Below, in pieces: positions 33,483 through 64,000 of a stretch of DNA of 64,000 bases. The notes below the pieces were generated by a model that worked only from the letters and a program-made list of their open reading frames with translations, made no database searches and had not been told where the DNA came from. Position numbers and translations under genes: made by a program. Every line of letters begins with the position of its first letter. Position 1 is the stretch's first letter. The DNA is from Selaginella moellendorffii (taxonomy: Eukaryota; Plantae; Lycopodiophyta), in the NCBI RefSeq assembly GCF_000143415.4, contig NW_003314266.1, forward strand, positions 1,758,463 to 1,822,462, written 5' to 3'.

Positions 33483-33516
33483 CCAAGAGAAATTTATTTT
33501 GTTTTAACAAAGTAAC

Positions 33517-34631: not shown

Positions 34632-34665
34632 CCGGGTTGTGGATGGACAAAATGGTAATTACCTC

Positions 34666-37359: not shown

Positions 37360-37634
37360 TTTACATTACTTAAGTGTAATTTTCAGCTAATAATTTCTTA
37401 TTCACTTTAATCCTCAGATCAAAGAAGATCTTCAGAATATCCTCAGAATATTCCTGTAGTCCATTGCGTTGGATCACCACATCACTCTCGATCACACCCT
37501 GTGTCAATCCACAATGCCGCCCCACAAACCATTCCCCGGTGCCAGTGATTCGACTCCCAATGGAGAGCACTCGAGCGACGAGACTGAGAAAAACTTTAGG
37601 GTTCTCAACATTAGGGCTCTTGGGATTGGAGGGA

Positions 37635-38104
37635 ATGGGAGAGGGCGATGGCGATCTGGAGGCCCTGGAGGAGGAGGTGAGAGAGATGGACGCGCGCGTC
37701 AAGAGAATGCGCAGCCAAGGCCCCGCCAGGTTTAAATCTTTGCTCCAGGACCATCTTGTCAAGCTCCGGCCCCCTCCAACGCTAGAGCCGCCGCTACACA
37801 CGCCATATCTCGATGGAGTAAATGGTTAGTACATAGCTAGCTTCTCATTCCTCCTGATTGAGTGAGAGAAGAATGTCTGGAAATTCGCAGGTGATTTGTC
37901 TGCGATCCAGACCAGACGGTTGGAGGTTCTCAATTCGCTTCCCGGATTGCTGGAGCGCATCAACAAATGCACGGATGATCTCTCCGCCACTCTCGCCAAG
38001 CTCAAGCACAAGCGATCTTACGACCTGGTTTTCGAGCTCCCGCATCCAACACTACCCGAGGAGGATGGCGATGGCAGCCTCGCCAGTCGATTCTTTCCAA
38101 CTTA
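37635..38104 (+). CDS. Small two-exon coiled-coil protein, possibly plant kinetochore NSL1-like
   Basis: LEALEEEVREMDARVKRMRSQGPARFKSLLQDHLVKLRP / NSLPGLLERINKC resembles, from memory, the EALE.D...MA.KI..YR..LP..LK..L...L...RP / MP.VL.RM.EC pattern of plant NSL1-like proteins; GT-AG intron ~37825-37890. Confidence 0.5.
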
Positions 38105-38593
38105 GCCGCCGTCTCTCTCTCCTGTACAAACAAGGAAGAACAGCACAGCGAATTCATCAACAGGGACAGTAAAAGAACCAACAAACACAAGAAAATTACT
38201 ATACTACCACCTCGTCGGCATTAATTTGCTTGTATCCTTCTGACTTGTAAGTGTTCTCTCGTTTGTAACATTCGGTTTCTGTCCGTCCATTGAATGTTTA
38301 TCAATCAGCCACTGTGTTTGCTGATCACAACTTCAATCTACCTCTCAAGGTCCGGGATTGATCCAGCTTCTACTCGAAGATTTTCAGCTTCCCAGCCTGC
38401 AAATTTACGGCTCTTGGATCACAAGACTTAAGTGAAAAGAAGAAGTGCCCTTTCCAAGCGAGCGAGCAATTGGTACCAGCAAAAACTCCGCTTCAAGAAC
38501 AGCATCTCAGTCACAAGTTCCCAAAGAAAATGCCTGGCCAAGATGTCTGCTTGTCTTTCTGCTCAAGTCGAAATTACAATTAACTATTGTAAA

Positions 38594-38662
38594 GCTTGAG
38601 TAGCTCAGACGGTCAGAGCGTTGTTAACCGCAAGGTCGGAGGTTCGACCCCTCCCTCAAGCG
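38594..38662 (+). pseudogene. tRNA-Asn(GTT) pseudogene
   Basis: Copy of the 37286 tRNA lacking GCGGC from the 5' side of the anticodon arm; A and B boxes intact. Confidence 0.85.
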
Positions 38663-38972
38663 AATAGATGAGAAGGGCTTTTGGAGATAGATGCCAGCTT
38701 GCTGCATTATCCATTCGGCTTGGAGCTCCAGGAACTTCTATCTGGCGAAGGAGAATCGGGCTAGCTGAGGAGATTTCAAGATCGTCAGAAGCGTTTTAAA
38801 ACCAGTAAAACTTTTTACCTCGTACCCAAACCGGTAATGGTGCTCTTCCGGTTCCGTTGTCAGCTGACATGGCTGGTTTTCTCGAGCCGAGCGTCACAAC
38901 ACTTGGAACCTCCACGACTACAGCTCTCCACCTTTAAAACGTTTCGAGCGGCCAGCGCAACGATCACTACCG

Positions 38973-39359
38973 ATGGCAGAGCTGGACTCGAGAATGAAGG
39001 CCGTGAAGAAACTCCCATCCACCGGCGGCGGATCGTCGGGGCAGCAGCAGCGCAGCTCCATGAAGAAGCTCAAGGCGCTCCAGGGCGACTCGTACAAGAT
39101 CTACATCTACAAGGTACTCAAGCAAGTCCACCCGGACATCAGCATCTCGATCAAAGCCATGAACATCATGAACAGCCTGGTCCATGATATGTTCGAGCGG
39201 CTGTCCACCGAGGCCGGGCGGCTGGCTCGATACAGCAACAAGCCCACCATCCAGAGCCGCGAGGTCCAGGCCTCGGTCAGGCTCATCTTCCCTGGCGAGC
39301 TCGCAAAGCACGCAATCTCCGAGGGAACCAAGGCTGTCACCAAGTATGTGAGCTCCTGA
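38973..39359 (+). CDS. H2B: Divergent histone H2B variant, 128 aa, intronless
   Basis: [24 protein letters not shown]...[26 protein letters not shown] histone fold. Confidence 0.95.
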
Positions 39360-39879
39360 CCGGGACGATGATGGCTTTTCAGGCATTACGCTGCGAAGAT
39401 CCTGTTAGAAACCACAAAGCTTATGATAGCAACGTACCTCCCTTTGTGCAAAATTTCCAGAGATCTAGTGTTCTTTCTTTCAGGAGGAATGAGAAGCTAT
39501 ACTGACCATGCACTCCATCGGCGTCTCCACGAGTTCTGGCCTGGATCCAAATTTCCAGACTTCTCGTGTTCTTTCTTTCTTTCGATCAAGAGGAATGAGA
39601 AGAGCTATACTGACCGTTTACTCCATCGAAGCATTGCGTGGATCCAGCGTTGGAGGGGCCGGAGCTTGACAAAGAGCTCGCGAGGCCTCGCATTGTCTTG
39701 ACGCGAGCGTCCATCTCCAGATCGTCATCGCCTCCTCGCTAATGTTATCCCCCCACCCCATGAGAATCCTTGTCACTCGAGAGCCGGAGAAGATGCTGCC
39801 CTAGGGCGCCGAGATCGTCGTCTACGAGCCTTGCGTTGTGGAGAGCGGGATTCTTCGCCTAGGTACGTGCCTGTGGATT

Positions 39880-41052
39880 TCCAATCCGGCAGCACTTCAA
39901 GTTTGTCACGCTGCTCGTCTTTGCAAGACGATCCAGTCCAGACGCACTAAGCAAGGATTTCTCGCAGCGGAACTTCGCCACGGCAGTGGAGCTCTATACA
40001 CAAGCGTTAAAACTCTCACGCAGCGAGGAAGATCGATTCGTGGGACTCTCCAGTCGAGCGGAGTGCCTTGTGGTTCCAGTTGGGATGGGCTCACAAGGCT
40101 CTGGAGGACGCTGAGAGCGCGCTGGATCTCCGGGCTGGAAACGAGAGGAGCCTCCTCCCGAAAATTTGAGCACTATGGAAGCTCCGGCAGTACAGTCGTG
40201 CGGAAGCTTGCCTGGAAGAGAGCCTGAAAGCCAGGATCTTCAGGGAGCAGAGCGAGTCCGGCCTTCGCGATCTTTCCAAGTTTCTCACGGGAGGCTGTAG
40301 CAAGCAAAGTCCTCCAAACGTTGCGGAGTTCGTCGGTCCCGTTCGAGTCGAGGTGACGAAGGACGGGCGTGGGAGGGGGATCTTCACGACGACGGATGTC
40401 CGTCAGGGGGATTTGCTCATCGTCTCGGTGAAGGTTCCACTCAAGCGGGACATGCGAGAGAAGATGGATCAAGGAGACAACAACACGGAGCTCCTCGCCA
40501 GCCTTCTCCAGGTGTGCTTGGCATCCAAGAACTCTACGGCATAGCATGGCCGAGGCCGCGATGGATCAGTTGTCTATGCGGCCTTCTCCCAGCAAGCTGG
40601 TGGACAAGGAAGCTCCGAGCATGCATCAAATGAACATGCGCAGACCAGTTGCAACAGAAGAGCTCGAGTTTGATGTGATGAGGATCCGAAACATCCTGGG
40701 CTGCTCCACGGAGTTCGTCCTCTCCGAAAACTACAGCGACGAGTTCGCGCTGCCAGCCTTCATCAATCACTGCCTGCCCAACGTGAGCATCCGCAAGTTC
40801 GGAAAGTCCATGTTCGTGTACGCTGCTCGCGACATGGAATCAGGAAGCGCGGTCGTATGGCTACGCGCTGTGGCCACGGGTGGTGAGAAGGTCGACGACT
40901 GCCACTGCCAGAGGTGCCATCTTGAGAAGAAGCTCGAGGAGCCGCTGTGGGGGATCACTAACAAGTTTATGGAGCTTCTGGCAGACGAGAGGCTAATGAT
41001 AGAGCAGTGTGGAGATTACATCCAAGTGGCCGTGGATCTGAAGAGGTGTTGA
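39880..41052 (+). pseudogene. Disrupted SET-domain (SMYD-type, probably TPR-SET) methyltransferase
   Basis: EFVGPVRV...GRGRGIFTTTDVRQGDLLIV (N-SET), PAFINHCLPNV...VYAARDM and post-SET CHCQRC lie in different frames with a TAG at 40541. Confidence 0.7.
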
Positions 41053-42759
41053 GCTTGCAGGAAGGTATGGATCCGAGCTTCACATCCACCTTTCTTACTT
41101 TGGATGTCGAGAAGAGGCAGAACTAGTGGACAGAGGAGGAGCTGCAATGCTTGATGAAATACTCTAGGGACTGCATGACATTGCTCCATGTCAATGGTTT
41201 ACTGAGGTTTGTTTAAAAGGAAATCTGTGCCAACATTTTAATCCTGTAAAAATAAATTAGTTTAGGGTTCTAAGTGTGTGCAAATATTGTTTAGTTTGCT
41301 TAATAATAGTGTTTTTCCTATTTCATACAGCAGTAGTGTTATTTTTATTTACTAATTCAATTTAATCAAATAGAAGTTTATAATTATAAACATGTTTATA
41401 ATTTATAATTATAATATTAATCTTATTGTATATCAACCATTAGATAGTAGAATAAACTAGAATATACTAGAAAGTTTTAGGAAAGTTTATAAATTATTAA
41501 AATATTTAAAAATTATAAATACAAAACTAATTGTGAGTGCTTGAAATATAAAAGGGAATACAAAAAATGTGCATATCAATTAGCCTAAAAACCCTAGCTT
41601 ATATATAGGAACAAGTGGTCCGGATTGAAACCAATCTGATAGCTACTAAAATCCCACTATGCTAATATTAGTATACGGCATCATAACCGTACACTTGGCC
41701 CTCACATCATCCCCTCCTCTCAGAATAATGGAAGACCATTAGGGTTCTCTTATAGACGGGCCGGGATCTGGAGGAACATTAGGAGGAGGTATTGGTGGAT
41801 CTGTAGGTGGTATTAACTTCTCTTGATCCCTTTGTATGAAGTATTTTAACTACTGCACATGCACAATCTCTGGAGGATCAACCTACTAGACGTCATGCCG
41901 AACCTCATAAATTTGTGGTCCAACTTGCCACAACACCCGATATGGTCCTTTCCACTGCGCAAGCAGCCCCTTAGATAAACCACATACCGTAAGGAAAACG
42001 GACTAACACCGAATCATCCACTTTGTACTCTGCAAGTAAACGATGATGGGAGTTGTAGTGCCGTTGTTATCCCATTTGTATGCGGCCTAAGTGTTTGGCA
42101 GATTTTACTCGAACAAGCGGAAGAATGCTCGTCAAATATTGATCCCACGACCTAGCATCAGCAGTTCGTGGCAATCGCAAAGGTAAACCCAACTCCATTA
42201 ATAATATTGCATCATGACCATATAAGAGTTTATATTATGAAGCACCAATAGAACTCTACACCCCTATGACATATGCATACCAAAGAGACAGTAAATAACC
42301 ATCCCAATTCGAATGCTGAAAATTCACATACTTCGCAATCATCCCTTTGAATGTCTGAACGAGCCATTCCACCAGACCATTTGATTGTGGATGATAAACA
42401 CTAATGAAAGTGTGGCGTATCCCCAACCAAGATGTCAAAACATGAAATGCCTCAGTCATAAATGCAGGACCATTATCCGAAAGAATCCGCTTTGGACAAG
42501 AATGTTGGAATACCATTTGATTGAGGAAGAAGTATCCAATAGCAGTTGTATAGGCACTAGCAAGAGCACCAACTTCCACCCAACGAGTCAAGTAGTTAGA
42601 AGCAATAATAATATACTCATTGTCAGCATTCGATCATGGAAAAGGTCCTATAAGATTAAACGCCACCAACTCAAATGGATGAGAAATTGCAATTGACTCT
42701 AACTGTCCTTCTGCAGCACGAGGGGGAGTATTACGAACTTGGCACCAAATGTAGCTATG

Positions 42760-43963
42760 TGTAAGCCACAAATTTTTCCTTTCCAATTTGCCAGCTTACC
42801 TCGTCTATCTGACCAACACTGCCTTGGCTTGTGCTAAGTTCCCTTGCCAAATTTCTCACCTATTATACCAACTCCTACTTGGTCCTACTTAGTTTCAGCT
42901 ACTTACTGCACGAGCAATGGAGTGTTAGCCATCCATCTACGGATTCCCAAATCTCTCCCAATCCCCCTCCCCGGGTTAGACTGGACTTAAGGTTCGGTTA
43001 CACTCCCCGCAGGCACAAACAACCAAGCACACCAAGCCTCTAGGTTCCTAACACCCCTTAGTACAACAAGACTTGATCATGGGACCCTCTAAATCCTAAG
43101 CCTTGGGTGCAGCACTTGTTTCGGGATGTCGGGGCGAAACACCGTGGCCTAACGGCCCGGTATAGGTACCTCTACCCCCCCCACTTCCATCCCGAAGGGA
43201 AGGCCCAAGCCCCTAAGAAGGGCGAGGACCAATGAGCCGCAAGGTACTCAAGTGGGGCACCACTCCACATGAGCCGGGAGCACTGCAGTCAGTTTCCCTT
43301 TCGGGAGTGGGAGCTGCTCTTGAACACTTCTCTGGGTGGCCCCTCCGGCACCACCCAAGCCCATGCTCACTCCCACCCAAGGCCCCTCGGCCCCAGTCTC
43401 AACCTCAAGCTAGTTTGGAAGCACCACTGGAGAGTTCCTTCAAGATTGGTTCCTGGACCTCATTATCCCTACTATACTTTTGGAACCCTCTGCAGCCCCC
43501 CCCCCCCCCCCCCCTGGGAGACGCACGCTTTGGGCTTTCACCCCTTGACCCGTATTAGTACTCGGACTTAGTCTTTGGCTCAATCTCGGACTCGATCTCA
43601 GATCCGACTTCGGATTTGGTTTCGGACTCAATCTCGGACTCGATCTCGGATCCGACTTCGGATTCGGTTTCGGACTCAATCTCAGACTCGATCTCAAACC
43701 CGATCTCAGACCCAACCTCGGACTCGACCTCAGACTCGGTCTCGGACCTGATTTCGGATCTCGGACTCCGTCTTGAGCTCGGTCTCGAACTTGGTCTCCG
43801 AGTCGGTCTCGGACTCGATTCCGGACTCTATCTCGAACTCGGTCTTAGAGTCGGTCTTGGACTCGATATTAGACTTGGTCCCATCTGATGAACTTTTTAT
43901 CATTTTGGTCAAGCTTTCGGGGCTCCTTTAGCCTATGACACCTCGGCGAGTTGGTTCCTTACA
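42760..43963 (-). mobile_element. 1.2-kb solo LTR (family C) inserted in the element A integrase
   Basis: TGTAAG...CTTACA termini, exact TSD CTATG (42755-42759 and 43964-43968); its start matches 61078-61120. Confidence 0.9.
43560..43880. repeat. Hexamer-based (TCGGAC/TCGATC/TCGGTC) tandem array with a 48-bp higher-order unit inside the solo LTR
   Basis: 43581-43628 and 43629-43676 are near-identical 48-mers. Confidence 0.85.
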
Positions 43964-46364
43964 CTATGCACATACTGGATAATATCATGTCGCATCTCCA
44001 GCCAATAGAAAGACTTGCGCAACTTCTCAGTTACACAACAATGTCCCATATGCCCACCGAGAACAGAAGAATCATGGTAGGCATGAAGAAACTACGGAAT
44101 AAAGACAGAAGACACCACCAACCGTAAATGATCATCAAGATCTGTCCCCACAAAATAAATAAAGCCATCTTCAAAGCGATATTGAGAATGTAAATGCCGG
44201 AAAGGCAAGTCATCAACAAGTGATGCAAGATTCTCAAACCCATCTTAAAGCCTTTAAATCCATGGCTCAATCTTTTGAGCCTTGCGAACCTCATCAAGAG
44301 AAGGTAGATCTTGCTCTGTGCCTTGTGGACATTGAACATCAAGTACAGCAACTGCTGACGGCACAGAATCCTCGTCTAGAAAATCCACAGATGTTGGAAC
44401 AATATGCTCGTTAGAAACATGAGAAGAGAGTGGAGAAGGAAGAGGAGCTCAAGAAAGGGCATCAACATTAGCCATAAAACTCCCTGGGCGATGAACAACA
44501 TCAAAATCATATATCTGAAGCTTCAAAGCCCATCAAGCAGTACGACCAATCAGGTTCTTCCACTTCAATAATGAAGTAACAGCAGCATGGTCACCTTCAA
44601 GTAATGTCTGAGAACCATGTAGATATGCATGAAGTTTCTAGAAACCCCAGACTGCTGCTAAACACTCATTCTCTGTCATGAAGTCGTTCATCTCTGCTGG
44701 TTGTAATATACAGCTTATATACGCAATGGGATGGCGCTGATCAGACACACTCGAACTCTCTTACATCAGCACACCTCCAAGACCAATGTCAAAAGCATCC
44801 ACCCGCAAAATAAAAGGTAAAGTGTAGTCAGGATATGCCAAAACCGGAGGAGTCATAAATAGCTCTTTGAGATCCACGAACGCCCGCTGACAATTTGGAG
44901 ACTAAATGGAAGATGACGTTAATGACTTCAACAATGCTCGCAACGATGCAGTGTGATTAAAAAGATGATCCACAAAATGACCGAGATACTACACCTTGCC
45001 CAAGAAGCGCTGTACATCATTCACACACTTCAGAGTAGCGAACTTTAGAATAGCCACAAGCTTGTCAAGATCAGTTTGCAAACCTTTACGAAAAATATGG
45101 TATCTAAGATAAGTTGTGTCCTTGGACCCAAACACACACTTCAACCACTTCAGCTTTAAACCAGTATTGCGTTGCCGATCCAACACTTTATAAACATCAC
45201 GAACGTGCTCCTCCTATGTCCCTTCCGAGTGGATCAAGACATCATCAATGAAGTCAGTAGTCACCTCTGGCATATCGCAAAGAACCTCATCCATCATCCG
45301 CTGGAAAGTTGCTAAAGCATTGTTCAAACTAAACGGCATCACCAAGAACTCATACAAACCAAATGGTGTACGAAAAGTAGTCTTAGGAATATCTTCTTCG
45401 GCCATCGGTACTTGCTAATACCCAAAAGCAAGATCTAGCTTGGTGAATCAATGACTTCACCCCAAACGATCCAAGAGATCAACAGTGTGAGGAAGAGGGT
45501 ACACATCTGGGATCGTCACTTTGTTTAATGGGCGATAATCGATGTAGCAATGAATACTCCCATCAGACTTCATCACAAGATGAGGTTTATATGTCTAAGG
45601 ACTCTGCGACTTTCGAATAACACCCTTCTTCAACATCTCCTTGACGTTTGTACGTAAAATCTTGATCTCCTTTGGTGACCGACGACGAACATGAACCTTG
45701 ATTGGACAAGCATCCCCGGTTGGAATCGGATGATGTATGGCAATTTTGGCTTCAGACAATAAGTCAAATTCAAAGAGATCAGAATACTCCTTTATGAGCT
45801 GGTCAACTGCTGCAACACAAAGATTGTCGGAGGGATCAGAAAAGGGAAGAGCAAAACAAGACGAAAACATAGAAGGAAATAGTGGGGGAACAAAAGTAAT
45901 GGAAGCAGAGGTAGAAGTAGAGGGATGAAGATGTACAGAAGTGAGAGGAATGGATGAAACATAAGGAAGTATAAGATAAGGGGGAAAAGCCTCAAAGTCA
46001 CACTTGGCATGATTGCACTGCAACCAATCCATACCAAGAATGAGGTCAAAAGCTTGACTCAGCACCACCCGCAATGATTGCAACTCAAACTTGAGATCGC
46101 CCACATGCACAACTAGGTCCACTTCATCCCGTGCACATGCATGTGTACGGCCGTTGCCATAAAGAATAAAAACTAGTTCCGCCATACAACGCAAATGTAA
46201 ACGGCAACATGTGGCAACAAGTCAAGCAATAGAAGATAAACTCAAACCTGTATCAACCAACATAGAGAGAATAATATGAGACCTCTTGTTATAAAAATGA
46301 GCTTGGAAAGTAAACACTAGATTGTAAGCTCTTGAGTTTGGATTTCCTGGGAAGTCACCCAACT

Positions 46365-48970
46365 CAAGAGGATCTACAAAAGTTGTTTTTGTGGGAACAT
46401 CATGATGTTCTGACAGCGGGACATGGTGGAAAATGAAAGACTCTTACTTCATTGAACAAATGAATTTTCTAGTTTGGTATGCAATGTTTTTGCCCTATAT
46501 ATTAGCAATATAAGTGTAGAACTGAGAAGCAAGCTGGAAAGTTGCAATGCATTCCAGCATCAGTATAGCCATTTCAAAATGTGATACTTGATTTCATCAC
46601 TTACTTGCCAAAGTTTAAAGGTTATGATACTTTGATAGTGGTTGTGGATCGGTTGTTGAAGATTGCACACTTCATTCTAACTATGGAAATAGTGAATGCA
46701 AAACAAGCAACAAAGCTTTTTTTCCATAAAGTAGTGTGGGTTCGTGGTCTTCTAGAAGAGATGATCTCAGATAGAGATTTGAGATTTACAAGGAAGTTTT
46801 GGGGCACACTATTCCAGTTATTCGATACCAAGTTGAAATTTAATACAACTTATCATCCTCAAACCAATGGGTAAACCAAATTTGTGAATGCTCAAATTAA
46901 GGATTATCTGTGGTACTATGTCGTGGCAAACCGACAAGGCTGGGTTGAGCATTTGGACATAATAGAAATCTGTTATAATAATATATTTCACAGCACTATT
47001 AGTTGTTCTCTATAGGAGATGCTACAAAGGAATGCTCATGAAGTTCTTCAATAGATTGTTGTATTAAAACCAATGTCCGAAGCATTGGTTCCAGCCATTG
47101 AGACTTGTATGCTAAGCACTTATGCCAAAGTTGGTCTAGAGCTACTAAGGTGATGGGCAAAGCTTAGGATAGGTATCGACATGATAAGGATCATCATCAT
47201 CGGGATGTATCCTATCAAGTGGGAGATCATGTGTGGTTATTTTTCTGAAACTTGAATATTAAAGGATCTTTATCTTAGAAACTATTACCGAGATATATTA
47301 GACCCTATCGGGTGTTGAAATGAATTGGTGATATATCCTATCAGTTGGATATTCCACAAGAGATGTCTAGACTTCATGATGTGTTTTATGTCAATTTACT
47401 GACCCCATATCATTAAGATCCTAGCCACTCTAAGGATGTCCGTCCAACTTTGGATGTTATTGATAGTGAATCTGAGTATGAGGTTTAGGATATTCTTTTG
47501 TCTCATAAGGCATGTGATGGTTGAACCAAAGAATATTTAGTTAAGTGGAAAGGTTACCTATCTTGTGAATCAACTTGGGAGCCTCTTAATAATCTTACAC
47601 ATGCTTGTGAGCTTGTCACAGAATATAAGAATCATAATAATCACTAGCTTTTGTTGTAATAAATCTTGCAAATCAATAAAGTAATATATTTTTATAATCA
47701 AACGTTTCTATTATACATATTCTTGGGTCAGTTTTGGCAAGCTGACTTTGGCACTTCGGTGCATGGGTATAATCCATAACCATAGGGATAACTATTATAG
47801 ATTGATCACAAGTCTGCGCCTTTCTCTTGATAACTCATTTTTAAAAAAGGGGCATGGTCATGTAAACAACTTCATCTACCAATTTATAATAGTTGTCTAA
47901 ATCTTTTCGATAGGGTTGATTTTTTGCTTAGGGGAAGTTAAGCCTCTAACTCTCTCCCTATGTCCCTGCGGGTAAAAATATATCATTCCTTTGTAAGCTG
48001 AGTGGTACTCTAAGCAACAAGGGTGGTTAACTTCGCTAGTCATTTCCTTGTCGGTGATAACTAGAGGGTGTCTGAGTCTTAACGTTTTTGGATGTAGAGG
48101 AGAGGTTGTTCCATAACTCATTTAAGTTGGTGTGTTTTCCACATAGTGTGCTTTTCATTAACTTTCGAGTTATTTCCTTGACGATTTGTTAGACTCAATT
48201 ATGCATCAATGAGGATGTTGATCTTCTCTAAAGGGGAGAGAGTGTAATGAATATGACTTCAGGTATTGAAAAATATTTGTCGGCTAATCCTTATGAACAT
48301 TCTCTCCTTACTACCACGATAGCAAGAGATCGGTACTATTGGTTCTCTTTATGGTCTCCACCCAAGCTAGTTGAGAAACTAATCAACACATATGCACTTA
48401 GATTAGAATGTAAATAACCAAAGAAAATGACTTAAAAGACAATTCATGGGATTCAAATATAGAGGGAAAGGGCCTATAAATAGGAATGCACCCCCTTTTC
48501 CAATCAATTAAGAGTTTTACGATATTTGGGGTTAAGTGTCATTTTGGGTGACCTCCCAAAATATCCAAATTCAAAAGTTTACACAAAAGGGCACTAAAGA
48601 AGGAAATCCTAAGTTGTTATTAAGTGAAACATACTTGATACGATGATGAGAAACTTATGTTGTTAGCTTGTACTTGCTAGTGTTAAGAACCCTCGTGATA
48701 TTGAGATTAATCCCTCAATATTCACTATTATGCCTTTTGTGTTAGTCTTGTTCCAATTGGGTAATTATGGAAAGTGTCATAAACACAATCCCATGTCCAA
48801 ATTCACAAACTAATGTCATTCCATATTTAGTAAATTTCAAGTTAGTCCCAAAGACTAACTCCTGATAATAAGGGAGGCTTGAGGTAAAAGCCCAAAGTGT
48901 GTGTTCTGCGGGGGCGGGGGGGGAGGGAAGTTATAAGGGGTTCCAAATGTATAATAAGGATAGAAATTGG
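46365..48970 (+). mobile_element. Chromovirus element D, 3' half (integrase, chromodomain, PPT, 3' LTR from 48243)
   Basis: EHHDVLTAGHGG zinc finger; DFITYLPK..VVVDR..YHPQTNG; chromodomain SEYEV..EYLVKWKGY..CESTWEPL; PPT AAGGGGAGAGAG then TGTAATG; 48585-48970 is the reverse complement of 60607-61069. Confidence 0.85.
48409..48583 (+). mobile_element. Solo LTR of the TRIM family B inside the D 3' LTR
   Basis: TGTAAATAACC...AGTTTACA; reverse-complement homologue of 56694-56888. Confidence 0.75.
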
Positions 48971-50204
48971 ACGTAGAACAAGGAATGACAACAGCCCAGA
49001 GCTAAACTAATGTCTCAAGTAGTCAAATATGTATTCCAACCAAAGTCTAAGCCTAAATTCCATGCTGCTTTAGTTGATGGAATACCCTCATCGCATTACA
49101 CCACTGGTATGTCAAAATTGTGCCAAACACCATCTGACACTATTTTGCATGCAAGTGCTGGATATGGGGAATTGGTGCTCATGGGATTATACTAGACCCT
49201 TGTTCTATAATGTAATGGGCTTAGAGTTTAACTCCAAATTCAAGTGCGCTACATTAAGTTTGGCTTTGATTTGAGTACCTCATGCTTGTGATTTCCTAGT
49301 GGATATATAAGACAAACTTGAGCTAGCAACGTTGAACATGGGATAAGCTCAAGATTAAAACAAAAAATTGGTTAATGAGCATTATCATCATTGTCATGAT
49401 TTAGTTTCCTTGTGTTGTTTAACTAAAAGCTATGCTTTTTCAAGTCTTGCAATTCTTGTATATTCTTCCATCAAGTGTTTAATCTGCAAACTTCTTAATC
49501 TAGAGCAATATCAAGTCATACCCTTTCAAGGTTACCTTTCGCTGAAAAACCACTATCCACTACAAAGGCATTTTTGTGATACTTAAGCACATTCAATGCA
49601 ATGTAAATGGCTAATTTTTGAATACTGGTTGTAAAGTGATGAGACATATGGATAAAGTGGTGAGGCACAACAAAATCTAGTGAGTAATGCAAAAAAACTT
49701 CTTCATAATGTAATTTTTAGAGCTTGTTACTGTATTCTAGATCCTACTATATTTGAAATATAAGCATACTTGTGTGGTGAATATTTTAACGTAGTCTTGC
49801 TCATTGGCAAAAAATTAAATTGCATTAAACTTACCTAACTCTTATGATTTTATAGAGGAGAGAGTGTGTGTGAGCTTATATTACTTGTGCTTGATCCATA
49901 TTGCAAAACATATATGGATGGCAAAACATATAAGGGTGCTTTATCCCAATGATAATATGCATTTGGAAATGGATGGTATCATTATCAGCTTGGACAAAGG
50001 ATTTCTTTTTATTTTATGGCAACATTTGAGGAAAAATGACTTAAATTTCACGTGGTAAGTGAATTTTTTTTGTGCATTAACCTTTCACTAACTTTTCGTT
50101 CTAATTATTCTTAACATCTACTTTCACCAAAATTGTTTATTTTTAAATATGCTCCATCTTTTATTCTAGGATGTAATTTTCACTTTCAATCAAACATCTG
50201 CTCA

Positions 50205-50380
50205 TCTGTAGTATGCAATTCCCAAATGGAATGGTGGTGGCTCTAACAAGAACTTTGGCATTGGTGATGACCACCCCATCCACCCCAACACCATTTGGAG
50301 CAGTGACGGGCTGACCTGTTGCTTGGCATATGACCAAGCACAAAATCCCACTGTCTCAAAGTTCCTACCCATGGATCAAG
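50205..50380 (-). pseudogene. EXORDIUM/PHI-1 family gene fragment
   Basis: WVG..ET..GFCAWSY and PVTAPNGVGVDGVVI....LV...TIPFGN match the PHI-1 motif P..APNGDVG.DGMVI..A..L....TNPFGN; frameshifted. Confidence 0.72.
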
Positions 50381-50471
50381 TGAGCTTCTCCCCACATTCT
50401 CTGTAAACCTGGCTTGAGGAGTAGTGCTCGGCTGTCAGATTAAAGCAAACGCAGTTAAATAGCGTGTTAAT

Positions 50472-50543
50472 GGAGGCATAGCTCAGTTGTAGAGCAATCG
50501 GCTGCAGTCCGATAGGTCACCAGTTCAATACTGGTTGCCCCCT
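50472..50543 (+). tRNA. tRNA-Cys(GCA), atypical, possibly a pseudogene
   Basis: GGAGGCATAGCTCAGTTGTAGAGCAATCGGCTGCAGTCCGATAGGTCACCAGTTCAATACTGGTTGCCCCCT; stems pair except an A-C mismatch in the acceptor stem; D-loop has TG rather than GG. Confidence 0.7.
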
Positions 50544-50759
50544 TTGCTGTACAAATCTGTAAGCTTTCAGCTGCAGTGCCGACTGCACAAAGTAAGGAAG
50601 CACATGGAATATCGCAAAGTAAGCAAGCATGAAACACATGGGATAATGCGACAGAAGCTGCTACTATATGATTGCCATACGTTCAAAGAGCTCTATAACT
50701 TCATACTCATCCCTTTGGCTTCTCAAAGCTATAGTCTTTTCTTTTAAGAGTTTAGAGAA

Positions 50760-52088
50760 ATGGCTCTCACAGCAGCTCCAAAGTTTTTCACCATCGAGTC
50801 CGCTGCTTATCCTGGCTATTGCATTACGCAACAAGGCAACCAGGTTGTTCTCAAGTCCAAGGACGCGCTCAATCCCTTCCAGGTAAAATCTTTCAAAACT
50901 TTGCCGGTTGTCGATCATCATGGGAAACTCTTGTGCAGCTGTGGTACAGGGATGAGTCATGGAACTTGCTGAACCAGGAATTCAGTGACAGGGATGAGTT
51001 CCTGGACCAGGATATCAGTCACCTCTCCGCGTTCGTGTTTGTAAACCACGGCTCTAAGAAAGCTCTCCGGTCCCAGGCATACTCAACGTCTCAAAGCAAG
51101 GTAAACAAAGATAGTATTCATACATACACGGTTGCTGATCATATGGAATTTTGATGGCAAAAGGCTACTATTGGAGACTATGATCCGGCAGGCCAAGACA
51201 ATTATCTCCTGTGGCGTATTTCAGGGAGCCACGAAAATCAAGTCTTGATCACCATGACTGTAAACAAGTCATCTTTTCTAAGCCACACTTCCTCAAGTGC
51301 TAGCTTCAAGGATGGGGTGCCAGTGGTGACATCCAACAGCAATGGAAACTCCCACTGGAAGCTCGTCACCTACAGTAAGCTCATGAATCATATGATTGTT
51401 CTTCTTGGTTGTGGCTCATATATATGATGATGATGCACAGAGCCTTCTCAAGAGTACAGGATTCTATGCCACTGGTTTGGGCAGTACTTGACTTGGAAGC
51501 AGCAAAATGTGGACGTAACTTTCAAGAATGCAGTCAAGCACAACGATGAGACAAACGTGGTGGCTATTAGTCCAAACAACGTTCCTCTCGACAGCATGGT
51601 TTGTATTTTCATCGTTCTTTGTAATCTTATCTCATTCTATTTGATTACATATAGACATGGTACAAGGTTCCTGCTGGAGGAAGAGATGATACCACGTACT
51701 TCACCTCGTTCGTTCTCATAAACAAGGTGACTGGTCTTGCTCTCAAGGGGTCAGCCAAGCCGGGAGACAAGGTAACTAGTGCACACTGTTGAAAACTTGA
51801 AGAATTTCGCAAACTAAACGAATTGGATGATCATGGCAGGTGCTCTTGACTCAATATGATCCTCTCAATTACAGTTTCGTGTGGTCTGAGAACCGATTCC
51901 AGGCTTCAAACACGGACTATCTTGCGATCAATCTGGATGGAACCACCTTGCAGTGGGCTCTGCAGAACGACGATCAGTACCAGAACAGTGCGTGGTATCA
52001 TCCTCTCGTGCTTCGCTCGGCATCTCCAAACCAAGGATATCTTGAGCAGCAGGCCTGGAAATTCAATCCAGTGGTGGCAGGGAATTGA
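50760..52088 (+). CDS. Two-domain Euonymus-related (EUL, ricin-B-like) lectin, ~6 exons
   Basis: Twice-repeated pattern (Q)xWY(R/K)...F.(F/L).N.....ALK/R....| ....YDP......(L/V)W....WK, with short GT-AG introns (50883-50938, 51101-51163, etc.) at equivalent positions in both halves. Confidence 0.75.
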
Positions 52089-52235
52089 CCATCAACCATC
52101 CTGTATACATAAGGGACTGCTTATCACTTTTCTTTTTGCAAATAACAGGACATAACATAAGTAAAATTACCTATTTATTACAGTTACACTTGTTGTATTT
52201 AAAATTTTTTATAAAATAAAACTAATAATATTATA

Positions 52236-54457
52236 TTATAAGGTTTGTAAATATATATATGTATTACCCTAGCTAAGTAATACATTAATTATAGTACTAT
52301 AGTATATAGACTGTCCATTTGGGGATTGAATTTGGTCTATCTATTCTTAAATTTAAAAGAGAATGAAGAAATAAAAACAAAAAGCATAATCCTAAACATT
52401 AATGCAAAGCACTATTAGAAAAAATTTCCCTTTAAGGATAAATTATAATGCCCCTCATCTTCACCAATGTAAGTGCTTGGGATATAGGAATAGATATATT
52501 AATTAAAGTTTAAACCTCTACCTTATATATAATCTTTTTGCAAGATTTAGAATTTTAGCTATTAGTGCTAGCTCATCCTTGGTGTGTTGCCATTTCCAAC
52601 TTTTATTGGACATGATTACACAACTTGTCTTATTTTCAGTGTTCTGTCATATCTTGTTGATATGGAACATGATTGTGACTTGTGACATCGATTGGCGAGT
52701 TATGGATGATGTAGTCTGGTTCTTGGAGAATATTCAAGGACTAAGTTTATAAGAAGATGATGTGTATGAATTCGATTCTAGATTGTTTTGACAAGTTTGA
52801 TTATTATGGAGATAACTTTAAAGATGAAGTGGAGATTTCATAGGGTATCAAACTTTAAATCTGCCATCTAATCCTTTTTCTTTACCTTTTACTCTTTCCT
52901 AACCTCTTTTTATTTCTCAGCCTGAGCCACCTTCTCATGTTCCTAGTATTGCTTCTTTATTTGTAGTGTTTTCTTCTTTTGACATATCAATCATTTATGA
53001 TTCTTATGATTCTCATTCTTAATCTAGTATTGAGTTGAGTGTTTTCTGTCCTCCTCATATTAATCTAGATGTTAAGTATGTGCATGAAGTTGAGAATCTT
53101 GCTTTTGTTTCATTAGTAGAGTCTTTAATCAATTCTAGTATTGAGTATTTATTTGTTCTAATGGTTGAGTCACTTTGGCTAGAGTTTCGGATGTATGTCC
53201 CTACTTATGAGTGTTATTGAGAGCCTTTGCTTTACTATTTCTACTGAAGAATTTATATATTCCCTTGAGAGTGGGCGTTATTATTGATTTTTTTGTCTCA
53301 AGTGTTGAGTTGTGCGTTAAAAAGGTTGAGCAGTGTGAATCTTTTATTTATATTGTGGTGTCCGAAGTATTTTATAATAAAAAGTCCCTTATTTTCCAAG
53401 CTTTAAGCAAATATCCTTATTTTGATTTCCCCATTTTTGCATAGTCAGTTGTTATAAATTCCTCTTTTGATGCTTTTTTATCCACTTTTCCTTCTTCCAC
53501 ATTTGTTTTTCCTCAATTTTTCTCATTTTCTTTTTTCTACCCCAATACTTCAAACTTATTTTTCTTTGGAGGAGGGGTAGAGGAGATGGATAAGAATCTT
53601 GCCCTGATGATGGAGTGAGGATGAATGAATACAATAGTGGAGTAAAGATGAATGACATAGATTGTGAAGTAAGGATGAGTCCGAATGGAACATTTGACTC
53701 TAATGTAGTGATATCGAATAAATGGGATAGTGGAGTGAGGCTAAATATAGATGCCAGAGTGAAGACAAACATAATGAGTCCAAACAAAGATAGTGTTTCA
53801 GAACTTTTTTTCTTTCGAGAAGGGGATTAAAAGGATGTGGAAAATGAATAGAGTGAGTTTGACCTTTTATATGCAGTGCTGAATGACAACAGTGGTTGTT
53901 ATAGTTATAGTCCTAAATTTAAGTTAATGGTAGTCTTGGAGGATCATTAATAGACAAATTTAGAGATAGGATGTATTATTTGTTATACAATGGTGCTTTA
54001 TAGATTGTAGCATTTCTCAAAGTTCCTTGTTTTGGTTCAAAATTATGGTTACGTAGTTGGTTTGAGTATTTAAGAGTTATATATAGAGTTATAACTGATT
54101 CACTAAAATTCCATAGTTGAATGATACTTATACCATGGCTTTGGGTTTTGTTTCAATCATGGTTTTCAACAACTTTATTGGTGGTTTTATGAAAGCTGCA
54201 AATTCTTGTAATAGTTTATAATTGTTCATCAAAAGTTTCAAATGTTCCACTTGAGTTATTGCCATCACCTTTTTCATATTCCAAAAGGGAGGATAGTGTA
54301 AGGTTTGTAAATACATATATTACCTTAGTTAGGTAATACAATACTATAGTATATAGACCGTTTATTTAGGGATTGAATTTGGTTCATCTATTCTTGTATA
54401 TAACTAGGGGTCTAAACCTTAATTAATATACCTATTCCTATATCTTGAGCACTCACA
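52236..54457 (+). mobile_element. Decayed non-autonomous LTR element with ~160-bp LTRs, related to family A
   Basis: Direct repeats 52240-52348 and 54301-54395; PPT AAAAGGGAGGATAG before TGTAAGG at 54297; LTR ends GCACTCACA; PBS TGGTGAAGATGAGGGGCA is present but inverted. Confidence 0.72.
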
Positions 54458-55382
54458 ATATTAAAATAATAAAAAAAGTCAATATAAATTGTGTGATTCA
54501 TTTAATTTATTATTTTCTATATTAAAATAAAAAATAAAGTCAATATTCTACTTAGTTTTGAATTAAATACTTTATTGGTATTGCAGTATTATATTTCAAA
54601 ATTACTTAGAATGCCCACTTGTTTTCAAGATAATAAAGAAAAATTAAATATTATAGTTACAAAAGGTAGAATTGCCTACTTTTGTTTATTATAACACAGA
54701 AAAATTAATAACAATAAATTATAAACTAAGAAACAGAAATAATCAAGGAAACAATTTAACAAATATAATTTGCTGCGTGTTGCATGTAGAAATGTTTAGT
54801 TTTCTTTATAGTAGTGTTATTCTTATTTATGAGTTAAATTTAGCAAATGGAAGTTTATAATTATAAGCATGTTTATAATTTATAAACACAAAATTAAAAT
54901 TATTTAATATCAACCATTAGATGGTAGAAAAAACACTAGGAAGTGTTTAGGAAAGTTTATAAATTATAAATGTGTTTATAAATTATAAATACAAGATTAA
55001 TCTAATTGAATAACAACCATTAAATGGTAGAATATCCTAGAATATTCAAACATACTCTAACCACCCACTCCCTTACAGATTTTGCTTAAGCAAACCAATA
55101 AAAGTGTTAGTAAGAGTGTCACTAATAATAGATATACAAAAATCCTAAATTTAATTAATTAGATACCACACTAGGAAGATACTACTTGGTAGAATAATTT
55201 AGAATGATTATTATTGCTATAATTTATATTTTTGGTTTGCTTAAGTAAAATTGTAAGAGGACTCAATTTTATTGTTTTTGATGTAGCAATACACAAGATT
55301 GAGACGGTAGTGAATATACCTAGAATATGCTTGGATATTTTAGGATATTCTACAATCTAATGGTTAATATTCATTTAGATTA

Positions 55383-56693
55383 TGTGAGGGCCAAGTGTAC
55401 AGCTACGATGGCGTATACTAATATTAGTGTAGTGGGATTTTGGTAGCCATTGGATTAGTTTCAATCCGGACCATTCGCTCTTGTATATAAGTTAGGGTTT
55501 TTGGGCTAATTGATATGCACATTTTCTATATTCCCTTTCATATTCCAAGCACTCACATTGGTGGAGGTGAGGGGCATCTTTGATTGTCCCTGATGAGTGC
55601 TAGGATTTAGGATTTTGGTTTAGATCTAGTTTTTTTCATTTTCTTTCTTTTATTCTTTCCTTTCAAATTTTTGGTTTAGATCTATCTTTTTGCATTGTCT
55701 AGATCTACCATTTCCTTCTAGCTTTTTGCCATTTATCTTCTTTTGCTCTTTCTTTTTCATTCATCTTCATGGCAAATCAACAATCTCCTCCTTTTACTCT
55801 AGAGCAGCAGTTGGTACAATTGCTTGATGTTATACGCTTGCAATTGAACAACCAAACTCAATTAATGGCGGCATTCACAGCACGTAGTACAACTCCTTTT
55901 GCTCTTGGTGCCAATCCTCACGTTCGGCCAGAGTTCTTTCATGAGAATCTTGGGGATGATATGTACCATTGGTTCGATCATTTCACAGTGATTGCCATAT
56001 ATCATTTTTGGGATGATGCTTGACATTTGCATGAGTTTCCCATGTGTTTCCAAGGGATGGCGTTGCAGTGGTATAATGGTTTGAGTGCAGCCACTCGTAG
56101 GGATTGGAGTGTTATCCCGAATGTCTTCAAATGCGCCTTTGGACATGCCGATGACTGTGATGATGCCTTCCAACAATTGCATCGTCTTTGCCAAGAGCCA
56201 TTTGAGTGGCTGATGCAATTTGGCATTCGTTTTTGAAGTTTTTTACTCCCGCCACCTTTGACGATGCTCTTCGTTTGGCACAACGTTATAAGACGTCACC
56301 TCTTCCACTTTTCGCTGCACATTCTTCAGCTCCACTTCCTATGGGTGATGGTCTTGCTCCAATGGAGGTTGATGCTACTGCTTCTCGAGTCCAAAGACAA
56401 GGGCAAGGATGTGGTCGTGGCCGTAATGTTCGCTGTTGGGCGTGTGATGAAATTGGTCATACTTATCGGCATTGTCGGTGTTTTCCGCATTAGCGACATC
56501 CATTTCCTGGGTGGAGACCTTGGCATCAGCAACGTCTTGTTGGTGCTGCTGAAGTGGAAGGTTTGGCCACCGAGGTGCATCCGGAAAACGAGTTGCGCGA
56601 GTAACGGAGGGACCTTGCACGAATAAGTCAGTGACCCCTTCATCTTTCTTTTAGGAGTATCATCAAGGGGTTCACTCGGCACCAGTTCATCTA
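55383..56693 (+). mobile_element. Gypsy element A, 5' half (5' LTR 55383-55557, tRNA-Ala-like PBS, gag)
   Basis: LTR is the reverse complement of 41532-41706; PBS TGGTGGAGGTGAGGGGCA; gag with PMEVD and the zinc knuckle CWACDEIGHTYRHC. Confidence 0.9.
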
Positions 56694-57102
56694 TGTAAGC
56701 TCCTGAGTTTTGACTTCCCGGGAGGTCACCTAACTTAGTACTATTCAAACCCAAGGACGCTTAACCCCTAATATCCCAAGACCCTTAACCGATTAGAAAA
56801 GGGGGTGCATTCTTGTTCATGGGCCTTTTCCCTTTATATTTGAACCCCTATAGATCATATCTCAAGTCGTTCCTTTTGGTTGCTTACAATCCACCACACT
56901 TCCCTGCAAGTTCATGCCCTCGTAAACGGAAGCTAAAAGCCACAACTCTCCTGAGAGTCCCGCTCTCTTGACACCCTACCCCTCGGGTCAAGCCCAGCGG
57001 AAGCAAACTGGACTAGCTCAATGTCAATCAACATATGGTGTGATTCCCCTAAGCCAACTAATAGAGTCAGATCCGAGACCCCTCTGATACCAAATGTAAG
57101 CT
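56694..57102 (-). mobile_element. TRIM-like mini-retrotransposon B (3' LTR 56694-56888, ~200-bp non-coding interior, 5' LTR cut to 8 bp)
   Basis: Minus strand reads AGCTTACA-TT-TGGTATCAGAG (tRNA-iMet PBS) ... GCAGGGAAGTGTGGTGGAT (PPT-like) - TGTAAGCAACC...GAGCTTACA. Confidence 0.8.
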
Positions 57103-60100: not shown

Positions 60101-61077
60101 CTGGGGGTGGTTGAAGAACTTCATTGTCCTCAGAATTTGAAGAGGAGTCTGATTGCTTAGGTTTAATTGATTTAGCTACCTCAACTTCTTTATTCTTTTT
60201 TTTGTTCTCTTTCTTCAATTTGTGAACTTCCCTTCACAAATTCTCAATCTCAACTTCTTGAGCTATACACTGTAGTGGCATAGCATCTAACTCTTCCTCT
60301 TCTGACTTAGCCTTAACCTCTTCTATAGAATCTCTAACAAGAGTTTCCTCCTCTTGATTCACCCATCTAAAGGTTTCAGCATCATCAACACCATTCCTTT
60401 TCACCATTTTGCTAATTGCATGCATGGCATACAACATTCTTACCGAATGGTGCAATCCAACTAATTTTACACATGTTGTTTCGGATCTACTAAAAAAGTC
60501 TCTGCATATGCAACTTGAGTCAGAAAAATTTGACAAAAGTTAGATAGGAATCGCTAAGAAATTTGCGGGAGCCAAACTAATGTTTTAGATGCTTAGACAT
60601 GCATTCCAACCATTATCCTTATAATACATTTAGAACCCCATATAGCACCCCCTATTGAGAAACACACACTTTGGGCTTTCACTCCAAGCCTCCTTTAATA
60701 CCAAAAGTTAGTCTTTGGGATTAATTTAAAATTTATTAAATATGGAATGGTGCTAAATTGTGAATTTGGACATAAGATGAACATTATTGTATTCAGGACA
60801 ATCCTTACATTCTGTAGATATGAAAAATTAACAAATTTAAACATTTTCCATAATTAGTCAATCGAAACGAGACTAACATAAAGGGCATGATAGCAAAGGT
60901 GTTTAATAGACACGGTAAGCTATCATTTAGCAAATACTGAGAGACTAATCTCAATAATATGGGGGTTTCCAACACTAGCAAGTGCAAGCCAACAACATGA
61001 GTTTCTCATCACCATGTCAAGTATGCTTGACTTAATAACAACTTAGGATTTCCTTCTTTAGTGCCCTTTCAGTCTAA
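57103..61077 (-). mobile_element. Chromovirus element D, 5' half (5' LTR ~60600-61077, gag, protease, RT, RNase H), decayed
   Basis: KPPKPSNFKG gag start; FQMVFGMDFF; KTAFKTWYGSYEFLVMPFGLCNA; FDIEIIYKPGKDN. Confidence 0.87.
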
Positions 61078-64000
61078 TGTAAGGAACCAACTCCCCGAGG
61101 TGCCGTAGGCTCAAGGATCCACATGACATACGTTCCTCCGAATGCTACTCTACACCTAAGGGATGAGCTGAGTAGGCTGAAGCAGACCGAACCATTCAAA
61201 TGTGAATGGGTTTATGGCAAAGAGGATACTAGTCATGAATATGGGTGATATGGATGCATTCCATGCCTTCATATCAGGCTTGCAAACCTGGGCTCGCAGC
61301 GAGGTGATGCGTTGGAACCCGACCAACTACAAGGAAGCATTGGATGCATCTATCAAGGTGCATTTCAACAATAACCTGCAAAAAGGGAACACGACGGGGT
61401 CGGGGTCCATATTTAGCAAAGGGGCCAAACCAAGGAGAACATATAACAAAGGGAAATTCAAGAAGAGTTTCTCTAAATATGAGTCTTCAGGGTTTTGGAA
61501 AGGCAGATCTGGTGGCCAGCGAGCGAGTACATGGGGGAGTCAAACAAAAAGAAACAAACCCGCAGATAAGAAGGGCAAATCAGCTAGCAGCGTGGGAAAC
61601 AACGTATACTATAATTGAGGTGAAGCAGGACACTTCTCGAGGGAATGTCCCTACCCGAAGAAGGCCAGAGCCAATATGGCCATTAAATCGGGTGAAATTC
61701 AAATTAAGGTACGTGATTTAGTCCCTAACTCAAAGTTACTCATTACACGACCAACTTTGGTAGAGAGTCATTTGTGATATCTACTAGCCCTCCGAGGGAA
61801 GTTCAGAGGTAGCTTTGTTAAGATCCTTATTGACACGGGTGCTTCGGATAATTTTGTGGCTGCAGATATAGTCCGGCAAACCAGACTAACGGTGCAGCAA
61901 CTGGGCGAACCAAGGACTATAGAGTTTGTTCAAGGTAGCCAAAGCACTAATGAGGTACTTCGATAAGCAAGAGTCGAAGTAGGGACATGGAAAGCAAACA
62001 TCGATTTCACCATGTTAGACATGGCAGGATTTGACTTAATCTTCGGGATGGATTGGTTCAATCGGTTCGTGGTAGCCCTGCATGGACAAGGTAGGAACCT
62101 TGTGGTACTAGTGAATGCCCAAGGAAGAAGATCCAGGGTGGAGGCCTAGGATTTAAAGGTAGGGCAATGCAAGGCCAAAGATTCTTGCCTAAACCTAGTA
62201 TCCACGAGAGGACAACTCACTAAAGGAACCAAGGTAGCATTTTTGTGCTTACTCTCGGTGAAGAGTGACAAAAAGACGGGGACGAAGGAAGTACCTTTAG
62301 TGATCCAACGGGTGTTAGACCAATTCCAGGATACCATGCCGGAGGAGTTATCGGCAGGGTTGCCCCCCGCACGACCGATAGAATATAAGATTGAGCTGGT
62401 CGAGGGTGCTGAGGCAATGGTTTGTCCCCCCTATCATTTAAATAAAAAAGAATTCGAGGATCTCAAGCGCCAACTAGAAGAGTTGGTGGACAAAGGGTAT
62501 GTTAAGTTGAGCAAGTCGCTGTATGGGGCACCAATGTTATTTGTGAAAAAAAAAATGGATCTATGCGCATGTGCATAAACTACCGGTTGCTCAACAAGTA
62601 TACAAAGAAGAATAAGTACCCTTTGCCAAAGATTGAGGACCTGTTCGATAGGTTGGGAAAGGCAAAATACTTCTCAAGGATTGACCTTAGGTCAGGATAC
62701 TACCAGATCAAGGTAGCAGAGGAAGATGTCGAAAAGACAACCTGTCGAACAAGGTATGGGAGCTTTGAGTTTTTGGTGATGCCCTTCGGACTATGCAATG
62801 CGTCGGCAATGTTTTTGGCATTAATGAACCACGTGTTTGTACTCTATCTAGATCACTTTGTGATCGTCTATATTGACGACATCCTGATTTATAGCGAAAC
62901 GCTAGAGGAACATGCCGAACACTTGACAAAGGTGTTTGAGAAACTAAGGGAACACCAGCTGTATGCTAAAGAGAGCAAATGTGACTTTGCTCAACAAGAG
63001 GTAAAGTTTCTTAGGCATGTGGTGGGCAAAGACAAATTCAAGGTGGACTCTGAGAAGGTCCAAGCGATCTAAGATTATAAGCGACCATCAAATGTACACA
63101 AGTTAAGGGCATTTTTGGGGTTATGCAACTACTACCGAAAGTTTATCAAACACTATTCAAAAGTAACCCTACCTTTAATGGACCAAACGGGAAAATGAAA
63201 GATGGTATGGATAGCAGAATGCAAGGCAGCATTTGTCCACCTCAAAAGGAAGTTGAGGAAGGCTCCTATGTTAGCGTTACCAGACTTTGGTAAGGACTTT
63301 AAGGTAGAAATGGATGCTTCAGACTTTGCATTGGGTGCAGTTTTGAAGCAAGACAACCATTTAGTAGCATTCTTCTCAAAGAAGTTGGACAAAGCTTAAC
63401 GGAAGTGGCCTGCCCACGAGAAGGAATTGTTTGCAGTGGTTAAGGCCCTCAAGGAGTGGCAACACTACCTTGGGAGACACTTCAAAGTTTACACAGACAA
63501 TGTGGCAATGAAACACTTTTTGTCACAGCCCGACCTAAGAGGGAAACAAGATCAGTGGGCCAATGCTTTGGCTGAGTTTGATTGCGAGATTCTGTACAAA
63601 CCTGGGAAGAGCAACATCGTGGCGGATGCACTAAGTTGAAAAGCGAGCTTGAAGTTGGCGATATCTAGCGTGACAGCAACCTTTTGGGATGATGTGCAGA
63701 CAAAATATGAGAACGATGGTCTAGCACAAGTACCTCTGGCCTTCCCCACACTCGAACCATTTGTTCGAAGAACAACTTCGCCACACCTTCCGCATCCACT
63801 TCCGTTGTGGTGGGTATGAAATGTGCCATCTTTGAAAATCGGTCTACCACCATGAATATCGCATCAAACCCCTCACTTAGGGGGAGTCCCGTGATAAAGT
63901 CCATCATAAGACATTTCCACGGACGATCTAGAATTGGGATGCTTTGTAACAAGACCCCACTAGCCTTAGTCACAACTTTGACCTGCTGACATGTTGAACA
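61078..64000 (+). mobile_element. Gypsy element C (truncated LTR, gag-protease-RT-RNase H; integrase segment inverted from ~63742)
   Basis: ILIDTGAS; DLRSGYYQI..YIDDILIYS; DASDFALGAVL; YKPGKSNIVADALS; integrase MDFITGLP..VVDRFSKMAHF lies on the minus strand. Confidence 0.92.

Follow-up and report, generated by a model that had tools for sequence, protein, structure and literature searches.

Introduction

Inversions produced by two chromosome breaks and end joining have reciprocal junctions with 0-6 nt of microhomology and without long inverted repeats. Transposable elements are split by them, target-site duplications (TSDs) are displaced, and the ancestral order is kept on the homologous copy. 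All of these features were found in a 64,000-nt stretch of the Selaginella moellendorffii genome (contig NW_003314266.1; hereafter the window), in which two Ty3/gypsy retrotransposons, elements A and D, are each divided between both strands. The difference from such inversions was that one breakpoint lay in the unusual palindromic end of a miniature long terminal repeat (LTR) element, termed TRIM-B; nothing else set the locus apart. The segment at 46365-57102 is very probably a genuine chromosomal inversion in the lineage of this scaffold.

Two further systems are relevant to TRIM-B. Terminal-repeat retrotransposons in miniature (TRIMs) are recognised by two direct terminal repeats of ~100-250 bp, by a primer-binding site (PBS) and a polypurine tract (PPT) around a short non-coding interior, and by a 5-bp TSD. 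Self-priming by fold-back of the first-made cDNA has been documented for HIV-1 in vitro (PMC6088434). Fold-back copying of the cDNA's own 5' part would give an inverted U5 end, a direct U5 end, a 2-nt spacer and the PBS; the HIV-1 products are described as dead-end forms and not as copies that integrated.

Sequences and comparisons

All coordinates refer to the window, except those of the two loci fetched from the homologous scaffold GL377566.1 (L001 and L002; 28 kb in total). GL377566.1 was entered through a close relative of the window's UDP-glycosyltransferase gene (UGT; open reading frame (ORF) 31257-32747), and L002 was reached via the neighbouring H2B gene. To test collinearity, the halves of the split elements were mapped one at a time onto references without an interruption. 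The intact polyproteins P0097, P0089 and P0114 were obtained by a library search with the integrase core of D and were then aligned by tblastn. Window self-comparison, Pfam, ARAGORN and Rfam were also used.

Element D and the limits of the inversion

The features that define the inverted segment are as follows.

46365-57102: inverted segment, 10,738 bp; limits from the division of D and the reversed order relative to GL377566.1
57103-61069, minus strand: 5' part of element D, with 5' LTR (~61069-60600), gag, protease (PR), reverse transcriptase (RT) and RNase H (RH), ending ...ERLYLPS
46365-48975, plus strand: 3' part of element D, with integrase (IN) from its N-terminal zinc finger on, 3' region and 3' LTR (~48586-48975)
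46365-46370, plus strand: junction J1, CAAGAG, which forms D codons Q-E; the same hexamer lies in the TRIM LTR end (...AACTCAAGAGCTTACA)
57102/57103: junction J2, blunt; the TRIM-B side begins AGCTTACA and the D side ends ...ERLYLPS

Element D had a nearly open frame on the minus strand (...DGLIFYKQERLYLPS) up to 57103, and a plus-strand frame from 46365 opened with QEDLQKLFLWEHHDVLTAGHGGK, where the zinc finger of the integrase starts. The frame was continuous across the join (...ERLYLPS/QEDLQKL...). In the tblastn alignments, residues 253-781 of P0097 were placed from 58683 down to 57106 and residues 781-1005 from 46359 to 47009. The two halves likewise took up residues 432-949 and 947-1171 of P0089, and residues 281-784 and 779-998 of P0114. 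Hence, the halves of D abut at one residue, and nothing was lost or gained between them. The reading frame of D and the polyprotein mapping placed the breakpoints at 46364/46365 and 57102/57103. The break site in D carried neither a TSD nor an LTR terminus.

The LTR ends of D were blurred by indels, no definite TSD of the element was recognised, and the 3' LTR copy in the window was shorter than that in L002. Its end (48905-48975) differed from L002 ~19480-19560, and the L002 copy matched the window 5' LTR for ~45 nt past the point where the window 3' copy diverged. The alignment suggests a small deletion or replacement at the end of the D 3' LTR in the window. Another gypsy-like element (61075-64000), with a gag ORF at 61202-61618 and an intact RT ORF at 62563-63072, started 6 nt outside the D 5' LTR.

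Element A and its target site

Element A was divided in the same way, and its parts, its flanks and an uninterrupted reference copy were located at the following positions.

41532-46322, minus strand: 3' part of element A, with 3' LTR (41532-41706), IN, RH, RT and PR, from Pfam, tblastn and the LTR pair
55383-56693, plus strand: 5' part of element A, with 5' LTR (55383-55557), PBS region and gag with zinc knuckle, ending in ATCTA (56689-56693)
25923-29005, plus strand: decayed, shortened paralog of A, the uninterrupted reference from self-comparison
41332-41531: left flank of A, a ~103-bp AT-rich local repeat unit with the target duplication (C)TAAT at its end
55321-55382: right flank of A, inverted
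54810-55382: local repeat units, including the intact paralogous target site at 54946-55060

The LTRs of A were ~175 nt each with the ends TGTGAG...CTCACA, and in the self-comparison they were inverted relative to each other (41532-41711 versus 55378-55557, 87% identity). The gag region with its zinc knuckle was at 56206-56493 on the plus strand. The pol domains were on the minus strand (PR 45595-46194, RT 45214-45405 and IN 42256-42591, from Pfam RVP, RVT and rve matches). Intact gypsy polyproteins were collinear with A by tblastn from 46296 to 43963 and from 42762 to 42001. For both A and D, the LTR pairs and the pol order PR-RT-RH-IN (Pfam RVP_2, RVT_1 and rve; tblastn) were those of Ty3/gypsy elements.

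The site at which TRIM-B had entered A was marked by TAGAT at 46318-46322 and ATCTA at 56689-56693, with TGTAAGCTC... after each. The decayed paralog at 25923-29005 was collinear with 41530-46316 on the plus strand and then directly with the reverse complement of 56693-56072, and it held a single copy of the pentamer. The halves of A thus abut in this paralog, as those of D abut in frame. Beyond the LTRs, the outer flanks of A read ...CTAAT/A/TAATC..., and the two flanks, compared separately, each matched half of the repeat unit at 54946-55060.

The integrase region of A contained ~1.2 kb of extra DNA (42763-43962) between the zinc-finger and core regions, and the polyprotein residues were contiguous across it. 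A 12-nt tandem array with 17+ copies was present in this DNA at 43562-43880. The first 46 nt of the gypsy-like element at 61075-64000 matched 43921-43966, also within it (87%, inverted).

Gene order on the homologous scaffold

The genes carried by the inversion and a solo LTR next to D were compared between the window and GL377566.1.

50472-50543, plus strand: tRNA-Cys(GCA), from ARAGORN and Rfam (58.8 bits); L002 17993-18064 on the opposite strand
50760-52088, plus strand: multi-exon Euonymus-lectin-like (EUL-like), two-domain gene, from frame translations
48409-48584 (L002 19959-20136): TRIM-family solo LTR, flush with the start of the D 3' LTR

Over window 27616-41532, L001 and L002 were collinear with it, and the identity was 94-97%. 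After 41532, the scaffold continued as window 55382 to 52526, 52155 to 50660 and 50669 to 47514, all reversed, at 88-97%. GL377566.1 contained an exact empty site for A with a 5-nt overlap, the join reading ...ACAAAACTAAT/TTAAATGAATATT.... The 3' part of D and the adjacent solo LTR were present in L002 and were oriented like the 5' part of D in the window. An uninterrupted D, with ...ERLYLPSQEDLQ... on one strand, is expected in GL377566.1. The EUL-like allele was found at L002 16419-17747 on the minus strand, spliced, with a 339-aa product and 97% DNA identity; relative to UGT, this gene and tRNA-Cys were on opposite strands in the two scaffolds. No Pfam match was obtained for the exons of the gene, which we take to be EUL-like from recognised motifs.

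The window arrangement is the derived one because GL377566.1 has the empty site of A and the reconstructed non-inverted order. GL377566.1 keeps the original order, and A and TRIM-B are specific to the window lineage. The solo LTR is older than the split of the scaffolds since it is present in both; no recognisable TSD was found around 48409-48584.

The two scaffolds differed by 3-5% near genes and by ~11% in intergenic DNA, and only two UGT copies at >=90% identity (that is, at least 90%) were present in the sequence collection. The two haplotypes of the plant have been reported to be 1.5% apart, and ~11% is far above that figure and near the class with a synonymous divergence (Ks) of 0.12 (PMC7801247). 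GL377566.1 is either a haplotype or a young duplicate. The neutral term homologous scaffold is used for either because ~11% exceeds the haplotype figure and only two UGT copies were found.

These comparisons bear on several claims of a first-pass annotation made from the window alone. It had proposed a ~10.7-kb inversion with limits at ~46365-57102, and this was strongly supported by the split elements and by the non-inverted order on GL377566.1. Its division of A into a minus-strand 3' half and a plus-strand 5' half ending in matching 5-mers agreed with the LTRs, the domains and the collinearity of the paralog. The shared TAAT of the A flanks and their fit to the intact local repeat held, each flank being one half of the unit at 54946-55060. 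The D pol frame that stops at ...LYLPS (57103, minus strand) and resumes at 46365 (plus strand) was upheld by the frame and the polyproteins, and the predicted flipping of the EUL gene and tRNA-Cys was seen directly in their opposite strands in GL377566.1.

Junction sequences

Both junctions were reciprocal and lay in unique sequence outside long repeats in the self-comparison. No Ns were present in the window. Misassembly is unlikely, given the gap-free sequence and reciprocal junctions at which D kept every base. The plant is heterozygous and rich in repeats, and its assembly is an older one from whole-genome Sanger shotgun sequencing (PMC7801247, PMC5750206), a setting in which a misoriented contig segment or chimeric clones could be suspected. 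Such an artefact would have to yield exactly reciprocal junctions in unique, gap-free sequence with 4-6 nt of microhomology at the joins, and it is very improbable.

No repeat pair was found at 46365/57102 in the window self-comparison; the only shared sequence was CAAG/CAAGAG, a hexamer that occurs at only ~1.1 per kb in the window. Ectopic (non-allelic) homologous recombination between inverted TRIM or LTR copies might be proposed from the solo LTR at 48409-48584 and the inverted LTR pairs inside the region. No such repeat lies at the breakpoints, however, and the D integrase break shares only 6 nt. This mechanism is contradicted by the junction sequences, and its probability is negligible. 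Staggered-break and hairpin-opening (P-nucleotide-like) models were also rejected, the two sides of the junctions not being mutual reverse complements.

The earlier idea of rejoining through CAAGAG microhomology fits these data: the cut in D falls immediately in front of its CAAGAG, and that in the TRIM end falls within the hexamer. Two breaks and end joining are the best account of the junctions.

Structure of TRIM-B

TRIM-B is divided between J1 and J2, and its components are listed below.

56694-57102, minus strand: main body of TRIM-B, consisting of LTR end, PBS, internal region, PPT and LTR
57102-57095, minus strand: 8-nt LTR end AGCTTACA, followed by TT
57092-57081, minus strand: PBS TGGTATCAGAGG, followed by a ~170-nt internal region
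56907-56889, minus strand: purine-rich PPT (GCAGGGAAGTGTGGTGGAT)
56888-56694, minus strand: 195-nt LTR (TGTAAGCAACC...GGAGCTTACA), ending ...GCTTACA and adjoining TAGAT
46323-46364, plus strand: 42-nt remnant of TRIM-B, the reverse complement of the U5-side terminus of the LTR, abutting TAGAT

TRIM-B resembles a TRIM in its small size, its non-coding interior between PBS and PPT, an iMet-type PBS (TGGTATCAGAG), which presumably matches tRNA-iMet, a purine-rich PPT, a 195-nt TG...CA LTR and a 5-bp TSD (TAGAT/ATCTA). It differs in that only a single full LTR is present and the same U5 terminus faces outward at both sides. Instead of two direct terminal repeats, the element has one 195-nt LTR, a 42-nt inverted terminus and 8 nt.

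The remnant at 46323-46364 shared 36 of its 42 positions with 56694-56735 read on the same strand. It matched the solo LTR (48544-48583) at 33 of 40 positions, and only in the opposite orientation. The alignment scores in the reverse and direct orientations were 54 versus 26 against B's LTR and 45 versus 15 against the solo LTR. A reading of 46323-46370 as a 5' LTR in direct orientation with an internal deletion was therefore rejected, the reverse alignment being much better against both LTRs of the family. In-place inversion of the whole 5' LTR with a loss of 146 nt was less parsimonious and was also set aside; the eighth base at J2 fits the U5 end and not the start of an inverted LTR. The remnant is the reverse complement of the last 42 nt of the LTR, and therefore both copies of TAGAT touch the same U5-side terminus. 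When the segment is flipped, the left end of TRIM-B becomes a ~54-nt palindrome with perfect 16-nt arms, in which the inverted U5 end is followed by ...AACTCAAGAGCTTACA, TT and the PBS.

This structure did not bear out the break in an ordinary TRIM 5' LTR that the first-pass annotation had proposed, since the piece beside TAGAT is the inverted U5 terminus and not the start of an LTR. Its claim that the flip restores A, B and D together stood for A and D and failed for TRIM-B, from which no canonical element results.

Several observations weigh against the inversion as reconstructed here. Since TRIM-B is not made canonical by the flip, a stub that was already there or the synthesis of filler has to be assumed in addition. 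The CAAGAG hexamer in TRIM-B was deduced from the inverted 42-mer, and at this position CAGGAG is found in the intact LTR of B and CAAAAG in the solo LTR. The sequence of L002 stops ~1.15 kb before the D breakpoint, so that the continuity of D was not directly seen there. Moreover, independent contigs were sought via exact ORF products and none was found.

Origin of the aberrant left end

TRIM-B may already have possessed a ~54-nt palindromic stub (the inverted 42-nt U5 end plus ...CAAGAGCTTACA) before the inversion, a proposition for and against which the chances are about balanced. At J1, AACT together with the CAAGAG of D recreates the LTR's own 10-mer. The simplest account is a stub that predates the inversion, because the 10-mer is recreated at J1 and because J2 begins with AGCTTACA.

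The same inversion could instead have involved a normal TRIM-B with a 5' LTR that lost ~150-190 nt at J1, the gap being replaced by 35-42 nt of inverted templated filler or snap-back DNA. The LTR end would then have been copied in inverted orientation, as in polymerase-theta-type end joining. Plant repair junctions commonly contain filler DNA taken from sequence close by, and the 42-mer repeats, in inverted orientation, the LTR end located nearby at 56694-56735. Its first 7 nt (TGTAAGC) are common to the LTR start and the inverted LTR end and might have served as primer homology. However, a large loss on the TRIM side would be required while D lost nothing, and the copying must have stopped by chance at AACT to recreate the LTR 10-mer with CAAGAG. 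Mismatches to the nearby LTR end are also present at 6 of the 42 positions of the inverted copy, which is thus at least old. Filler synthesis is a possible origin of the 42-mer, though a rather unlikely one.

A further possibility is that a pair of U5 ends, supplied by two cDNAs or by one fold-back cDNA, was joined by integrase at TAGAT, with the inner ends joined to the D break in the same event. The abutment of both TAGAT copies to the same LTR terminus is what such a reaction would leave. A cross-paired integrase reaction would, in addition, leave split TSDs at both breakpoints; TAGAT was found at the A site and none at D. The cut in D is clean, falls between two codons and adjoins positions inside the LTR, without a TSD or an LTR terminus, and an independent break with end joining would still be needed. 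An inversion coupled to integration in this way is quite improbable.

As a tentative and on balance doubtful interpretation of a pre-existing stub, the left end of TRIM-B may be the fossil of self-primed minus-strand strong-stop DNA, and its palindrome may later have been the site of the inversion break. After ~42 nt, the growing cDNA would have turned back on itself to copy its start together with the 2-nt spacer and the tRNA primer. The folded product would then have primed the plus strand, and a copy with U5 at both ends, competent for integration, would have resulted. The likeness to the HIV-1 products is in mechanism only. Hairpin prediction for the 42-mer gave nothing notable (z = +0.8), and the data do not support a strong natural hairpin at the end of the LTR as the driver. 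Self-priming for TRIM-B stays speculation because the 42-mer is without a notable predicted hairpin.

Proposed order of events

The stepwise reconstruction of the two-break inversion would be as follows. D would have inserted before the two homologous scaffolds diverged. After the split, A may have entered the AT-rich local repeat (TSD TAAT), and TRIM-B, a small non-coding LTR element, may then have landed within A, between its gag and protease (TSD TAGAT). One double-strand break would have been made in the left terminal structure of TRIM-B, at 8 nt from its PBS-side end (CAAG^AGCTTACA), and a second within the D integrase, where codons S and Q meet (TTCC^CAAGAG). The ends would then have been joined in the flipped orientation, bluntly at J2 and through the shared CAAG/CAAGAG at J1, and the EUL-like gene and tRNA-Cys would have been carried along.

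Divergence was 13-16% between the LTRs of D, ~13% between those of A and 14% between the inverted 42-mer and the LTR of B. A, TRIM-B and the inversion probably all post-date the split of the scaffolds, and A probably inserted not long after it, because these divergences are set against an intergenic divergence of ~11%.

Other features near the inversion

GL377566.1 had a second tRNA-Asn(GTT) beside the H2B gene (L002 10205-10278). At ~38571-38664, the window had only a diverged inverted tRNA-Asn copy (89% to 37284-37382) that was not called by ARAGORN. Two H2B-like copies at 38973-39359 and 34397-34814 were 84-88% identical and flanked a glycosyl-hydrolase-17 gene; the right copy (38973-39359) had an unusual N-terminus.

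Implications

The inversion is of a known kind, ordinary though well documented, and the unusual detail is the miniature element with the same end at both sides. A structural difference between two homologous copies was resolved with breakpoints at base level, four events placed in relative order and the signature of end joining. In annotations, each of A and D is to be treated as one split element, and the orientation of the EUL gene and tRNA-Cys differs between the scaffolds. The knowledge of how inversions arise is not changed by this locus.

To our knowledge, the self-primed side reaction of reverse transcription is known only from retroviral test-tube work. If the left end of TRIM-B were indeed its fossil, it would provide in vivo evidence of this reaction from a plant. 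The wider interest of the locus lies in a miniature element that carries the same LTR end on both sides.

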